Sequence record: OQ722176.1 | DNA: 64,000 nucleotides | Direction: 5' to 3' (one strand) | Part shown: positions 3,066 to 62,799 of the stretch, piece by piece | Layout of the letters: every line of letters starts with the position of its first letter | Position numbering within the stretch: position 1 is the first letter of the stretch | Position numbers and translations under genes: made by a program | The notes under the pieces: model-generated | Told to the model about the DNA's origin: nothing | Seen by the model: only the letters and a program-made list of their open reading frames with translations | Database searches by the model: none

Positions 3066-4502
3066 TTAAAAGCTGTAGCGATCAACGCATACAGTTTTCA
3101 GCATGATCTTGACCGGCTCAAGTTCACCACCCAACAATGAAGTCAAGATTGATGGACTACAACCTGAAACCAACGCTGTACCCGCTTCGCCTGACTTAAC
3201 AGGAACGTTACCGATACGACCACGAATGTTCCAGAACACTAGTTGAGGCATTTCATAGCCTGCACGTGCGTACATGCCTTTGATTGCTTCGAAATTAGTA
3301 ATTTCGCCGCGACCATACCAACCACCACCGCGATTTGCTTCGTCGAATTCCATGTCGCTCATGATAAGCAACTTAGTTGGCATTTCTTCTTGTGAAAGTT
3401 TTGCCTTCTTCGCACGTTCTAGTAGAACGCTGAAACACTTGGTGATGTTAGTGCTCATGTCTTCGCCAGAGCGATTCATGTTGTCAAGACGCTCTTTCAG
3501 TGAGCTACCGCGCAACTGGTGGAAGTGCGGATCACTTGAGAACGAAATGAACTGGTCTTTGAAGATGCCTTCGTTACGTTCAGCAACGTAGATGCCTAGA
3601 GACATTGCAACTTGCTTACAAGAAACGCTTGAACGATCAGTACCTGCGTTGATCGGCGTGCTCATAGAGCCAGACACGTCTACAACAGGGATGATGCGCT
3701 CATCAGAACCTTCCATGTAGTTCGGTAGAGCTTTCCATTGCTCATTCGCTACAGATGCGTTACCGTGACTAACGCTTTTAACAACATCGTATGGGAACAA
3801 TGCAGCAGCGTTGATCTTCGCTTCACCTTTTTGAAGTGATTCGATGTAGCTTGTGTAACGTGTCGAAGCGTTACGACCGAATGCTTGTTGATAACGAGCA
3901 GACGCTACAGAAGGCAACTTACCGAAGTCGATTGCATCCCATTCTTGAGCACACATCTTTTGTTCAACGGTGTCAGACAAAAGAGCAAGAATCTTACGCC
4001 ACTGCTTCGCAGTCACACCAAGAGACTTGATTGTGCGCTTGAACACATGACCGTTTTTGCTGTTTTCACGTGGGAACCACTTCGCAGCAAGACCGTTTTT
4101 GTCATTGACAATTGCGTTTGACCACATAGTGATCGCGTCTTTTTCAAGTTTAGTACCGAATGCAACAATCAAGTCATCGAAACGACCTAATTCTGGTACT
4201 TTTGACATTACAGCACGAGCAACGTCTGGCTGTTCATTACAAAGTTTAGCGAACAAAGTACGGAAAGTACCACGTTCACCCGCGCCACCGCGAACGTCAC
4301 GAGACCATAGCAAGATGCGAGTCGCTAGTTCTGGGTTTTCTGCAAACGCACGACCGAACAGAGTTTTAGACTGATCGTTGCCACGCATAGCAGCAATACC
4401 GAAGAACAAGTTTAGACACTCGTTACCTGAAGTGCTGTGAGTAAGTGCACCGTTTGCTGTACGTGAATCGTTTGATTGCATAGCGTTCATAAATGCTGAC
4501 AT
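3066..4502 (-). CDS. DUF2828-like helical + vWA protein (Ro60/TROVE-like architecture)
   Basis: RDVRGGAGER and AAKWFPRE motifs, C-terminal vWA with MIDAS DVSGSM...T...SDMEFD; start moved to ATG 4502 after GAGGA SD. Confidence 0.75.
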   Translation of the reverse strand: MSAFMNAMQSNDSRTANGALTHSTSGNECLNLFFGIAAMRGNDQSKTLFGRAFAENPELATRILLWSRDVRGGAGERGTFRTLFAKLCNEQPDVARAVMSKVPELGRFDDLIVAFGTKLEKDAITMWSNAIVNDKNGLAAKWFPRENSKNGHVFKRTIKSLGVTAKQWRKILALLSDTVEQKMCAQEWDAIDFGKLPSVASARYQQAFGRNASTRYTSYIESLQKGEAKINAAALFPYDVVKSVSHGNASVANEQWKALPNYMEGSDERIIPVVDVSGSMSTPINAGTDRSSVSCKQVAMSLGIYVAERNEGIFKDQFISFSSDPHFHQLRGSSLKERLDNMNRSGEDMSTNITKCFSVLLERAKKAKLSQEEMPTKLLIMSDMEFDEANRGGGWYGRGEITNFEAIKGMYARAGYEMPQLVFWNIRGRIGNVPVKSGEAGTALVSGCSPSILTSLLGGELEPVKIMLKTVCVDRYSF

Positions 4503-4538
4503 TGTTGATTTCCTCATATTAAATTGCTGTATAATGTC
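4498..4538 (-). promoter_or_regulatory. Leader hairpin with UACAGCAA motif, occluding SD/AUG of the vWA gene
   Basis: GACAUU-A-UACAGCAA-UUUAAUAUGAGGAAAUCAAC-AAUGUC; the 3' stem strand contains the AUG. Confidence 0.65.
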
Positions 4539-10758: not shown

Positions 10759-10832
10759 TGGTGGACACGCAGGGAGTCGAACCCTATCTTCCTCATTGCA
10801 AGTGAGGCGCTTTCCCATTAAGCTAACGGCCC
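10759..10832 (-). tRNA. trnA: tRNA-Ala(TGC), distorted acceptor stem (possibly pseudo)
   Basis: G3:U70 kept; pairs 5-7 need a bulge. Confidence 0.7.
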
Positions 10833-11077: not shown

Positions 11078-11151
11078 TGGTGCCCCCACGAGGAGTCGAA
11101 CCCCGAATACATGATTACAAGTCAAGTGTTATACCATTTAACTATGGAGGC
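11078..11151 (-). tRNA. trnT: tRNA-Thr(TGT)
   Basis: Cloverleaf, CCA. Confidence 0.85.
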
Positions 11152-11157
11152 GATACT

Positions 11158-11270
11158 GAGTGTCGTTACTTGCGTCGTCCGGACTAGAGATACCAACTCT
11201 AAACGGGAGTCGAACCCGAAACATTTCTTTTCATAGAAGAATATTAGTAAATTGTTTGCTGAAAACACTC
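11158..11270 (-). ncRNA. Circularly permuted tRNA-like RNA with UUCAGCAA motif (Y-RNA-like)
   Basis: GAGUGU/ACACUC closing stem; motif; anticodon arm UUCUU-CUAUGAA-AAGAA; T arm CGGG-UUCGACU-CCCG; loop-closed UAGAG/CUCUA stem. Confidence 0.65.
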
Positions 11271-11279
11271 TTCGGTATT

Positions 11280-11353
11280 TGGCTGGGAAATAGAGATTCG
11301 AACTCTAACTGGCGGAGTCAAAATCCGCAGTGCTGCCATTACACCATATCCCA
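11280..11353 (-). tRNA. trnQ: tRNA-Gln(TTG)
   Basis: Cloverleaf, U1-A72, CCA. Confidence 0.9.
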
Positions 11354-11669: not shown

Positions 11670-11680
11670 TTGAATAAAAC

Positions 11681-11738
11681 AGTAATCCTTTTTGCTTTTT
11701 CCAAATAAAAGTTTTGTATTGTTTGCTGTAAGATTACT
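11681..11738 (-). ncRNA. Minimal 58-nt UACAGCAA-family RNA
   Basis: AGUAAUCU/GGAUUACU stem, UACAGCAA, CUUUU-AUUUGGA-AAAAG hairpin. Confidence 0.55.
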
Positions 11739-11743
11739 TAAAC

Positions 11744-11817
11744 TGGCAGGGGCATAGAGATTCGAACTCTAACGAACGGGTTTGGAATCCGTCATGCTGC
11801 CTTTACATCATGCCCCT
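11744..11817 (-). tRNA. trnW: tRNA-Trp(CCA)
   Basis: Cloverleaf, G73, CCA. Confidence 0.9.
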
Positions 11818-14599: not shown

Positions 14600-14715
14600 T
14601 GGCAGTCGGGGCTGGATTCGAACCAGCGACCACGTGCTTAACAGGCAATTGAAAGAGTGCTGGAGCGATACTTGACAGTATCATTCTTCGTGCTCTACCA
14701 CTGAGCTACCCGACT
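14600..14715 (-). ncRNA. tRNA-Asn-like RNA with ~40-nt insertion (UCCAGCAC motif)
   Basis: Intact acceptor (G73, CCA), D and T arms; inserted hairpin + motif before GC-CUGUUAA-GC loop. Confidence 0.75.
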
Positions 14716-16490: not shown

Positions 16491-16611
16491 TGGTGGAGAG
16501 TGGTGGATTTGAACCACCGACAAAAAGATTTACCTAGTTAGGGTTTGCAGCATGAATGCTTATCAGAATTCTTTAACATTCTTTTGCTCTACCAGACTGA
16601 GCTAACTCTCC
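16491..16611 (-). ncRNA. tRNA-shaped RNA with ~45-nt insertion (UGCUGCAA motif)
   Basis: Acceptor+CCA, D and T arms intact; AAAAGA/UCUUUU stem encloses GAUA-loop hairpin + motif. Confidence 0.75.
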
Positions 16612-61296: not shown

Positions 61297-62385
61297 TTAT
61301 AGACTGTGCAAATAATCGTATGCGATAGCCACTCGCGCATCATGTAACGCAGCACCATATGCAGGTCCCGGTTCAACATCGACCTTAATATTTCGTGTCA
61401 GTAAGATCAGTTCTGTCATTACTTTACGCGATAACTCATCACTAACTTGTGTCAGTGCGACTCTGAACGGTAAACCTTGCTTATATGCACCTAGATACTC
61501 AAGCGTTGCAATGATTGATTCATCTAGAGCGTGTGATGTATTGAGAGATAGCAAAATCTCAGACGTTTTATCAAACTGCTTAGTCGCACCGAATTTGGCA
61601 GTGTAGCGATTACGATGATCAAACGCTGCCCATTTAGCCATTAACAGCACGTCTTTATCAACTTCAAACGGCAATGTTTTGAAGTGTTTCAAGCTCATCA
61701 ATTCACGAATACTAGGTACAGAACAGAATCCCACGCGACCTAAGAATGCAAAATACATGTAGGCGTCTTTTTCTGTCAGTGCTTTTTGAGTCTCTAACCA
61801 AACACGTTCTTTCGGTAGATTATCAAGCATACCATCAGCTACCATTTTCTTACAAAGCTCGAAAGTTTCTTCAGCGACTTTGAATCCCATACTGTAGTAA
61901 CGAGCAAAGAAACGTGCAACTCGTAGAACACGTAATGGGTCTTCAGCAAATGCTTCAGTCGTGTGTCGAATAATCTTGTTTCTCAAATCGTCTAGACCGC
62001 CGTACGGGTCGATGACATCTTCAGTCGAACCCCACATAAACAAGCTGTTTGGCGTCATGTCTGGGATTGCCATTGAGTTGATAGTCAGATCTCGACGAGA
62101 TAAATCATCTTCTAAAGTCACACCATCGGTTGTGAACGTAAAGTCAGTTGTTTTGCCGCCAGTACTTCTCTCAACACGTGCAAGTGCAACTTCATTGCCT
62201 TGTTTGTCTAACCACACGGGAAAATCTGCCCCGATGGGTTCACCGTACATCATTTTCATTTGTTCATGCGTGCAATTTGTCACGACGTAATCAATGTCGT
62301 TCGGGAACTGAGCCCATCCATCAACATGTTTCAGAATTGAGTCGCGAACTGCACCGCCAACGATATATTTCTTCATTTCGAACAT
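61297..62385 (-). CDS. cca: tRNA nucleotidyltransferase (CCA-adding enzyme)
   Basis: YIVGGAVRD, DIDYVV, DLSRRDLTINSMA, EDPLRVLRVARF; start moved to ATG 62385 after GGAGA. Confidence 0.9.
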   Translation of the reverse strand: MFEMKKYIVGGAVRDSILKHVDGWAQFPNDIDYVVTNCTHEQMKMMYGEPIGADFPVWLDKQGNEVALARVERSTGGKTTDFTFTTDGVTLEDDLSRRDLTINSMAIPDMTPNSLFMWGSTEDVIDPYGGLDDLRNKIIRHTTEAFAEDPLRVLRVARFFARYYSMGFKVAEETFELCKKMVADGMLDNLPKERVWLETQKALTEKDAYMYFAFLGRVGFCSVPSIRELMSLKHFKTLPFEVDKDVLLMAKWAAFDHRNRYTAKFGATKQFDKTSEILLSLNTSHALDESIIATLEYLGAYKQGLPFRVALTQVSDELSRKVMTELILLTRNIKVDVEPGPAYGAALHDARVAIAYDYLHSL

Positions 62386-62457
62386 TTTAAATCTCCTTTG
62401 TAGACCTACACAATACAAGACTAAATAATATAAGTCAACCAGATATATGGGAAGATT

Positions 62458-62799
62458 ATGGAATATACGAAATACGAAATAGAAAAGTATCGAAGTCGCC
62501 GTAGTCATGGTATCAATCTACCTGATTACAAAGGGGCGATTTACATCGACTTGCAAAGCAGCCCATGTGGTTCAGACAGCAATTATTTCGCTGTTCTTAA
62601 TAGCGAAGAGCAAGTTGCAGTCGAGATAGCTTTCGGAGGGTATTATAACGAATCTGAGCCAGACCGTGACCCGATACCAGAAGATACAGATTTTCATTTG
62701 ATTGGCTCTCAAGGACATTACGAAGTTCAAGGGAGAATGTTTAACAGCAACATGCGAGTTTGGCTGCGTGGTGTAGGTAGAATAACAGTAATTTACTAA
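62458..62799 (+). CDS. Hypothetical protein (113 aa)
   Basis: ORF track. Confidence 0.65.
   Translation: MEYTKYEIEKYRSRRSHGINLPDYKGAIYIDLQSSPCGSDSNYFAVLNSEEQVAVEIAFGGYYNESEPDRDPIPEDTDFHLIGSQGHYEVQGRMFNSNMRVWLRGVGRITVIY

Follow-up and report, generated by a model that had tools for sequence, protein, structure and literature searches.

A candidate Y-RNA-like tRNA mimic in the tRNA array of Vibrio phage vB_VspM_VS2 and its presumed Ro60-fold partner

The spacer between tRNA-Gln and tRNA-Thr

The stretch of DNA analysed here (the window, 64,000 nucleotides) is identical to Vibrio phage vB_VspM_VS2 (OQ722176), a KVP40-like phage of the T4 type in the Straboviridae. Its minus strand carries 27–29 transfer RNA (tRNA) genes between ~7.9 and 16.6 kb, as detected with ARAGORN and Rfam. 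We describe a candidate structured RNA that fills the whole spacer between two of these genes, tRNA-Gln and tRNA-Thr, and that resembles the Y-RNA-like RNAs of the YrlA type. A preliminary description had read positions 11158–11270 as a circularly permuted tRNA-like RNA, and we found every helix and feature that it named there, on the minus strand. The interval held but was too short: the element runs from ~11279, with a leader that contributes one strand of a pseudoknot, to ~11152. Its parts and its neighbours are as follows:

11152–11279, minus strand: the whole element, that is, the entire 128-nt spacer from tRNA-Gln to tRNA-Thr; best match in the window to covariance model R1 (see below) at 11150–11282, 132.9 bits
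11272–11278, minus strand: 5′ leader strand of the pseudoknot, AUACCGA, pairing with the AS loop (permutation test)
11264–11270, minus strand: 5′ strand of the closing stem P1, GAGUGUU, 7 bp with 11158–11164; all 7 pairs covary across lineages
11254–11263, minus strand: family signature motif UUCAGCAAAC; core CAGCAA more than 90% conserved; presumed protein-binding site
11225–11241, minus strand: hairpin A, UUCUU-CUAUGAA-AAGAA, in the position of an anticodon arm and corresponding to the V stem-loop of YrlA; 5 of 5 pairs covary family-wide, loop unconserved
11203–11219, minus strand: T arm, CGGG-UUCGACU-CCCG plus a U-U; compensatory changes in the Vibrio phages and in the family
11185–11201, minus strand: AS hairpin, UAGAG-UUGGUAU-CUCUA, loop-closed and acceptor-like; pseudoknot loop at 11190–11196
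11174–11184, minus strand: reduced D arm, GUC-CGGAC-GAC, GG conserved; 100% paired in the Vibrio phages, 3 of 3 pairs covary family-wide
11165–11173, minus strand: A-rich 3′ linker, GCAAGUAAC, conserved across the family
11158–11164, minus strand: 3′ strand of P1, GACACUC (P1 covariation)
11155–11157, minus strand: 3′ flank AGU, conserved (family consensus n-G-U-u)
11280–11353, minus strand: tRNA-Gln(UUG), whose encoded CCA ends at 11280 (ARAGORN, Rfam)
11078–11151, minus strand: tRNA-Thr(UGU), which begins at 11151, right after the element (ARAGORN, Rfam)

The closing stem comprises 7 bp rather than 6. The pseudoknot strand begins 2 nt past the CCA of tRNA-Gln, 4–5 nt separate hairpin A from the T arm, and there is indeed no CCA end: the 3′ flank AGUAUC is followed directly by tRNA-Thr. 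The termini had been placed where the D arm would be. GUC-CGGAC-GAC is itself a D arm, reduced but with its GG retained, and the termini (P1) fall instead between the D arm and the hairpin in anticodon position, as in YrlA. Judged from its relatives, the element folds into five helices plus the pseudoknot, with the conserved CAGCAA single-stranded at the base of P1, opposite the A-rich strand. Folded on its own, the element did no better than shuffled sequence (minimum free energy −21.3 kcal/mol, z = +0.74). Lone-sequence folding is thus at chance level, and the support for the structure comes from the comparison with relatives.

Because a site scan found no promoter-like or terminator-like site between the element and either flanking tRNA, we infer that the element is co-transcribed with the tRNA array. 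By established tRNA processing, an RNase P cut at the 5′ end of tRNA-Thr would create the 3′ end of the element, and 3′ maturation of tRNA-Gln would create its 5′ end.

Conservation and covariation in phages

The element was found in 49 Vibrio phage records, with 72–100% identity and at the same location every time. None of the public Vibrio phage records marks it as an RNA, and a few put hypothetical coding sequences over it: 'hypothetical protein' coding sequences overlie its position in phages QD01, D484 and D482, and the one in QD01 also covers neighbouring tRNAs. These are probably annotation artefacts. We rejected a protein-coding spacer, as only short open reading frames occur there and they overlap the neighbouring tRNAs.

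We aligned the element from 12 Vibrio phages. P1 and the stem of hairpin A were unchanged throughout this alignment. Compensatory variants were seen in the T stem (CGGG/CCCG, AGGG/CCCU, GAGG/CCUC and GUGAG/CUCAC) and in the AS hairpin (UAGAG/CUCUA, CAGUG/CACUG and CUGAG/CUCAG). Overall, 95.6% of cells were paired and both sides changed in 6 pairs. The covariation score was 0.186, versus 0.074 ± 0.011 after shuffling (0/500) and 0.015–0.068 with slid partners.

The hairpin in anticodon position was originally thought to carry an A34 (AUG) anticodon. Its relatives do not bear this out: among close relatives, the loop of hairpin A reads CUAUGAA, CUUACGAA, CUGAUGAA, CCGAUAA, AUCGGA or UCGAUAC, and its length ranges from 6 to 8 nt on an invariant stem. 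A loop so inconstant in sequence and size does not serve decoding. That the element might be a tRNA pseudogene in decay, or a permuted tRNA gene that works and decodes with an AUG (A34) anticodon, is already contradicted by the data, and we give this reading almost no credence. The tRNA-like T arm would fit such a gene, as would a hairpin that resembles an anticodon arm and precedes a variable loop of ~5 nt; some distant family members even have a Thr-like loop, CU-UGU-AA. However, the supposed anticodon loop is inconstant among close relatives, the acceptor-like helix has only 5 bp, its loop is locked in the pseudoknot, the CCA end is missing and neither ARAGORN nor the Rfam tRNA model calls the element. 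The compensatory changes preserve all helices, which argues against neutral decay.

Relatives of the element occur in Aeromonas, FelixO1-like, myco- and uncultured phages. The Aeromonas T4-type phages phiAS5, Ah1, PX29, avDM12 and phiWae14 carry the same element after tRNA-Asn. Their P1 is unlike the Vibrio P1 yet complementary (GGAACAU/GUGUUCC, GGAAGAU/GUCUUCC and GGAUCAU/GUGAUCC), and the leader and the AS loop have altered jointly (UUUGUC/GACAAA, GUGCUA/UAGCAC and UUUACC/GGUAAA). A first scan of IMG/VR with the 15-mer GAGTGTTTNCAGCAA returned mostly chance matches, and these loci were reused as a negative control. Searching IMG/VR with the two-block pattern UUCAGCAAAC ... GGUUCGAnUCC gave 37 loci, many of them on contigs of 100–400 kb. 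Nearly all of these loci have a P1 of 6–7 bp, unrelated in sequence, and a recurrent 3′ flank (A/U)GU. The pattern also gave 22 matches in 596 Gb of bacterial genomes, in which P1 is poor and both a conserved flank and a linked gene are missing. This is about the number expected by chance, as estimated from the specificity of the pattern and the size of the collection. As far as the search pattern can tell, the family appears to be a phage family.

The covariance model R1 was built from the Vibrio and Aeromonas sequences. It gave 74 matches in the examined loci, from which 66 distinct sequences were aligned. Paired cells amounted to 92.9% (versus 59.9% after shuffling), 24 of 25 pairs changed on both sides, and the covariation score was 0.489, versus 0.131 after shuffling (0/500) and 0.04–0.11 with slid partners. 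All five helices are supported by covariation across the 66 members, showing that the arms are conserved in relatives. The family consensus reads P1, U(U/A)CAGCAAac, hairpin, GGUUCGAnUCC, A-rich linker, P1 and n-G-U-u; the 66 members have 45 distinct P1 sequences.

A rule-based parse yielded two long subtypes. Subtype (a) has the T arm, a loop-closed acceptor helix of 7–8 bp, UA and a textbook D arm, GCUC-AGUCGGUA-GAGC. Read from its sequence, it is a complete tRNA body with the 3′ half encoded ahead of the 5′ half, and these fuller relatives bear out the circular permutation proposed for the window copy. Subtype (b), which includes the window copy, has a helix of 5–6 bp with a loop of 6–9 nt that pairs with the 5′ leader, and its D arm is sometimes reduced. 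The pseudoknot between leader and loop (AUACCGA, 11278–11272, with UUGGUAU, 11196–11190) had been suggested as a possibility, and the comparison confirms it: in seven lineages the partners differ and the pairing is kept (the three Aeromonas pairs, AUACC/GGUAU, AUCCCA/UGGGAU, UGACCG/UGGUCA and UUACCA/UGGUAA). Complementarity of at least 5 bp between leader and loop is present in 8 of 10 independent lineages. The summed score was 48, versus 28.0 ± 3.4 for shuffled leaders, and none of 5000 permutations (0/5000) reached the observed value.

When we scanned for P1 + U(U/A)CAGCA alone, phage tRNA-array loci were often found to carry several modules. Long modules measure 95–146 nt, short ones 49–66 nt without a T arm. 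The outer module, P1 + CAGCAA, is the constant part of the family. The window holds a short module as well:

11674–11746, minus strand: second, short module, between tRNA-Trp and tRNA-Asn; P1 GUAAUCU/GGAUUAC (11682–11737), UACAGCAAAC, flank UGUUUU, no T arm

R1 matches this short module with 24.1 bits (E = 0.013), and the short module of KVP40 has a compensatory P1, GCAAUCU/GGAUUGC. The window copy may be a second partner RNA, similar to YrlB. Copies on one contig have unlike P1 sequences that are still complementary, which points to an RNA structure and not to a DNA repeat.

Several other identities were rejected. GCA AAC resembles the start of a transfer-messenger RNA (tmRNA) tag, but the frame stays open for 48 codons without an early stop, and ARAGORN calls no tmRNA. 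A hepatitis delta virus (HDV)-like or other self-cleaving ribozyme was considered since P1 encloses a single strand and a hairpin; the CAGCAAAC strand has no downstream P2 partner, and no Rfam ribozyme matched the element. An integron attC site, a miniature inverted-repeat transposable element or a DNA inverted repeat does not fit a P1 that differs between copies in one genome and keeps its complementarity. Finally, tandem tRNAs can mimic the T...D order, a caveat raised by Chen et al. 2014 (PMC4201824). Here, neither an acceptor nor a D arm lies ahead of the T arm, and the two acceptor strands are paired with one another.

A linked gene for a protein with a predicted Ro60 fold

Downstream of the array, the window encodes a protein that we consider the presumed partner of the RNA:

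3066–4517, minus strand: gene for a 483-aa DUF2828 + DUF7788 protein, on the same strand as the element (Pfam, PHROG 850, AlphaFold2 model, Foldseek)

The product matches Pfam DUF2828 and DUF7788 and belongs to PHROG 850, 'RNA-binding protein'. Its alignment displays helical repeats followed by a vWA-type DVSGSMS MIDAS motif. An AlphaFold2 model made with 23 homologues (predicted local distance difference test score, pLDDT, 73.6; predicted template modelling score, pTM, 0.69) has helices at residues 33–263 and an alpha/beta domain at 275–476. Foldseek found only four matches in the PDB at E ≤ 1e-3, all of them full-length Ro60 chains with a template modelling (TM) score of ~0.55: Thermus phage phiLo Ro60 (9KOP; 9L5Y chains A and B) and Xenopus Ro (1YVR). 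The protein is predicted to have the Ro60 fold. Its family (DUF2828/DUF7788) is found in 711 phage records, plus thousands of metagenomic proteins; the phages that carry it include FelixO1-like, Listeria A511-like, Campylobacter, jumbo and mycobacteriophages. The mycobacteriophage homologues are annotated as 'Ro-like RNA binding protein' and are also DUF2828 + DUF7788 proteins with no TROVE match. The window gene is equipped with a strong promoter-like site (4580–4553) and a terminator (3059–3036).

The DUF2828 gene is present in 21 of the 37 pattern-selected IMG/VR loci. Across 24 gene-bearing loci, the nearest strict module on the same strand lies 27–210 nt from the gene in 17, either upstream or downstream. 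Only 3 of the 116 chance-pattern control loci have the gene, and all three have modules 75–347 nt from it. Mycobacterium phage Clautastrophe carries three tandem P1 + ACAGCAA modules right after its 'Ro-like RNA binding protein' gene (L172:4500–4760), none of them annotated and with no tRNA array at the site. The middle module is a full T/AS/D permuted tRNA body and is the sole part detected by the YrlA model, at 39.3 bits, below threshold. In FelixO1, the gene heads the tRNA array and a long module follows ~1 kb downstream; in VS2, KVP40, phiAS5 and Ah1, RNA and gene share a strand, with the gene 6–10 kb further downstream.

In many uncultured phages, modules precede the gene by 27–210 nt in the same orientation, like a 5′ leader. 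Such an arrangement could mean that the RNA is a cis-regulatory site, used by the Ro-like protein to control its own transcript or neighbouring ones, and not a stable trans-acting RNA. We hold this to be very unlikely: modules are downstream of the gene in other loci (L139, L145, L146, L148 and L152), the RNA is 6–10 kb away in the window and in the Aeromonas phages, and a simple operator needs no tRNA-like body. Terminator-like hairpins separate the array from the protein gene in the window, so that in VS2 the RNA would act in trans.

The element could alternatively act in cis, as a processing or punctuation signal in the precursor of the tRNA array, with a fold that directs or bars RNase P, RNase E or exonucleases so that the tRNAs next to it mature correctly, and with no protein partner of its own. 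Such a role would suit its exact position between two tRNAs, the start of the pseudoknot strand just behind the tRNA-Gln CCA and the conserved 3′ flank n-G-U-u; moreover, every T4-type copy lies inside an array, and the YrlA of M. smegmatis is cut by RNase P (PMC4201824). However, many phages have modules beside the Ro-like gene and not between tRNAs, as at the array-free site of Clautastrophe, the short modules are without any tRNA-like part, and the single-stranded CAGCAA has no obvious role in recognition by RNase P or RNase E. We consider a processing element unlikely, and it would be compatible with a Y-RNA-like function rather than exclusive of it.

The element retains a genuine T arm and elbow elements and lacks an acceptor end and a conserved anticodon, as might be expected of a decoy or sponge for a tRNA-recognising factor (a host anticodon nuclease or another tRNA-targeting defence, a tRNA modification enzyme or an exonuclease) that works independently of the Ro-like protein. 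Phage tRNA arrays have been implicated in countering tRNA-targeting defences, and work on SegB and Septu in T-even phages points likewise. Still, the variable loop of hairpin A speaks against mimicry of one specific anticodon loop, and a decoy leaves the P1 + CAGCAA module, the short modules and the linkage to the Ro-like gene unexplained. A decoy is, in our view, distinctly unlikely.

Other features of these genomes bear on tRNAs and small RNAs more generally. In two tRNA-like genes of the window, 16494–16611 and 14603–14715 (both on the minus strand), the acceptor, D and T arms are intact and CCA is encoded; inserts of 46 and 54 nt replace the normal anticodon arm, and one of the two inserts includes GCUGCAAAC. 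The Rfam tRNA model gives them 55.8 and 48.4 bits, and ARAGORN calls neither. Either tRNAs with introns or additional tRNA mimics could be encoded here. Another Rfam tRNA match without an ARAGORN call (10762–10832, minus strand, 46.3 bits) has a KVP40 counterpart annotated as tRNA-Pseudo-1. A 403-aa open reading frame at 61297–62508 (minus strand) combines a PolyA_pol head domain with an RNA-binding domain, pointing to a CCA-adding enzyme or a poly(A) polymerase-type nucleotidyltransferase that may be relevant to the ends of tRNAs and tRNA mimics. An uncultured phage contig has a permuted (two-piece) tmRNA gene (L149:7158–7351; Rfam tmRNA_permuted, 96 bits) a few kb from a Ro-like gene and three Y-like modules. 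Matches below the gathering score were seen inside phage tRNA arrays to an HDV-like ribozyme model (L137:4214–4281, 38.4 bits, gathering 44) and to a group I intron model (L145:3622–3809, 44.7 bits, gathering 50).

Comparison with known systems and interpretation

Chen et al. 2014 (PMC4201824) describe YrlA as an RNA with a terminal stem, a motif GNCGAAN0-1G near its 5′ end, presumed to be the Ro60 site, and four stem-loops that succeed one another as V, T, AS and D; its gene and that of a TROVE-domain Ro60 protein share a strand and are at most 4 kb apart. The Rfam consensus (RF02553) runs from a T arm abutting AS through UA, the D arm and an A-rich linker to the outer stem. The element has much in common with it. 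Its ends pair as a terminal stem (P1, 7 bp, 7 of 7 pairs covarying), a short conserved motif follows the 5′ strand of that stem, the stem-loops come in the same order, V - T - AS (loop-closed) - D, with the D arm of the window copy cut to 3 bp and its GG kept, and the 3′ linker is A-rich. The T arm is of the tRNA type with a GUUCGAAUC-like loop (UUCGACU in the window, GGUUCGAnUCC in the family), and its stem covaries. Like YrlA, the phage family is linked to a Ro60-type protein gene on the same strand and often has a second, smaller partner RNA of the YrlB kind. The likeness to YrlA drawn in the preliminary description is therefore upheld by the module order, by the linked Ro60-fold gene and by the YrlA model itself, which matches the fuller, subtype (a) relatives with E = 1e-4 to 3e-6 at exactly the module coordinates found by the pattern.

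The phage RNAs also differ from YrlA. The linked protein is DUF2828/DUF7788 and not Pfam TROVE, many of the RNA copies sit inside tRNA arrays of phages, and the window subtype has a short AS, with its loop pseudoknotted to the 5′ leader, plus a D arm of 3 bp. The distance to the protein gene is 27–210 nt in most gene-bearing family loci and 6.6 kb in the window, where the gene is on the same strand and non-TROVE. Taken strictly, the element would not count as YrlA: it departs in the motif, stays under the Rfam threshold and probably also lacks a TROVE gene at a distance of 4 kb or less. Its architecture and the kind of protein linkage are nevertheless the same.

A precedent among phages is Thermus phage phiLo, which encodes Ro60 together with Yrl1 and Yrl2 in the same genome, and for which a complex with host PNPase has been proposed (PMC12135203; PDB 9KOP, 9L5Y). 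VS2 likewise encodes a protein with a predicted Ro60 fold, of which phiLo Ro60 is the best structural match, and two Y-like RNAs. However, phiLo Ro60 is a recognised TROVE protein with just 16–18% sequence identity to the window protein in the structural alignment, and its Yrl RNAs were found via a CGAA motif directly upstream of the gene.

Three further comparisons concern tRNA-like RNAs. T4 rnaC and rnaD (species 1 and 2) are also small, stable non-tRNA RNAs from a T4-type tRNA cluster, and rnaC has a T arm; unlike in the element, this T arm is joined straight to the 3′ terminal strand, as in a normal tRNA. We rejected rnaC and rnaD as homologues, since the T4 tRNA region has no P1 + CAGCAA module and no R1 match at E ≤ 0.05. 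In the permuted tRNA genes of Cyanidioschyzon merolae, the 3′ half of the tRNA comes first and a short loop connects the acceptor strands; their transcripts are processed into normal, aminoacylated tRNAs. In contrast, the acceptor-like helix of the element has 5 bp and is loop-closed and pseudoknotted, and the loop in anticodon position is unconserved. In the Tymovirus tRNA-like structure (RF00233), an anticodon-like arm and a T arm are likewise combined with an acceptor-like region that forms a pseudoknot, but this structure is 3′-terminal and belongs to plant RNA viruses. No other Rfam family scored at all on the element, and with 11.9 bits (gathering 40, E = 3.2) the match is at chance level; nothing in Rfam was above threshold on the window element.

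Taken together, these results favour a non-coding, Y-RNA-like (YrlA-type) circularly permuted tRNA mimic with a presumed Ro60-fold protein partner, a reading to which we assign a probability of roughly 0.6. A number of observations weigh against it. On the protein side, the link to Ro60 depends on a structure model of medium confidence: Pfam TROVE is unmatched, vWA_Ro60 stays under the cut-off (E = 0.18, 12.2 bits) and a sequence-profile search of PDB chains with the protein fails to reach Ro60, so that only fold comparison made the connection. The window gene lies 6.6 kb from the element and has its own promoter-like site, with terminator-like hairpins between array and gene. The association between RNA and gene could be confounded, since both tend to occur at tRNA arrays. 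On the RNA side, the GNCGAAN0-1G motif of YrlA is absent and replaced by U(U/A)CAGCAAac, with a core more than 90% conserved. The search with the YrlA model advocated in the preliminary description succeeded in part: it picked up the subtype (a) relatives at 37–43 bits, under the gathering score of 69, and gave no match on the window copy even at E ≤ 10. Lastly, the 66-member alignment was itself fitted to R1.

If the element is a Y-RNA-like partner, the Ro60-fold protein (3066–4517) would bind P1, the CAGCAA motif and the A-rich internal loop, as suggested by the gene linkage and by analogy with Ro60 and Y RNAs. The tRNA-like body, by the same analogy, may stabilise the RNA, tether the complex to another factor, or both. 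More speculatively, structured RNAs, perhaps tRNAs among them, might be what the complex acts on during infection, for instance through recruitment of a host 3′–5′ exoribonuclease such as PNPase, as reported for phiLo Ro60–Yrl. A larger generalisation is possible and, for the moment, doubtful: DUF2828/DUF7788 Ro60-fold proteins and CAGCAA Y-like RNAs, many of them permuted tRNA mimics hidden in arrays, may make up a large unannotated class of phage ribonucleoproteins that surveys, repairs or degrades tRNAs and structured RNAs during infection. Capturing host PNPase or countering tRNA-targeting host defences would be examples of such action.

In the literature that we searched, on permuted tRNA in phage and on DUF2828, we came across neither this RNA family nor its link to DUF2828 proteins. 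What the searched literature holds on bacterial and phage Y RNAs and Ro60 comes from a few studied systems and from genomes annotated for TROVE. If our reading is correct, the Ro60/Y-RNA partnership would reach phages in common laboratory use, among them KVP40-like, Aeromonas T4-like and FelixO1-like phages and L-cluster mycobacteriophages, through a protein family still classed as a domain of unknown function and with an RNA partner that employs a different recognition motif. Several records with hypothetical-protein coding sequences over the element would need correction, and some of the 'spacer' DNA of phage tRNA arrays would encode structured RNAs. These phages would then offer a genetically tractable system for the function of Ro60 and Y RNAs and for the reason behind tRNA mimicry.

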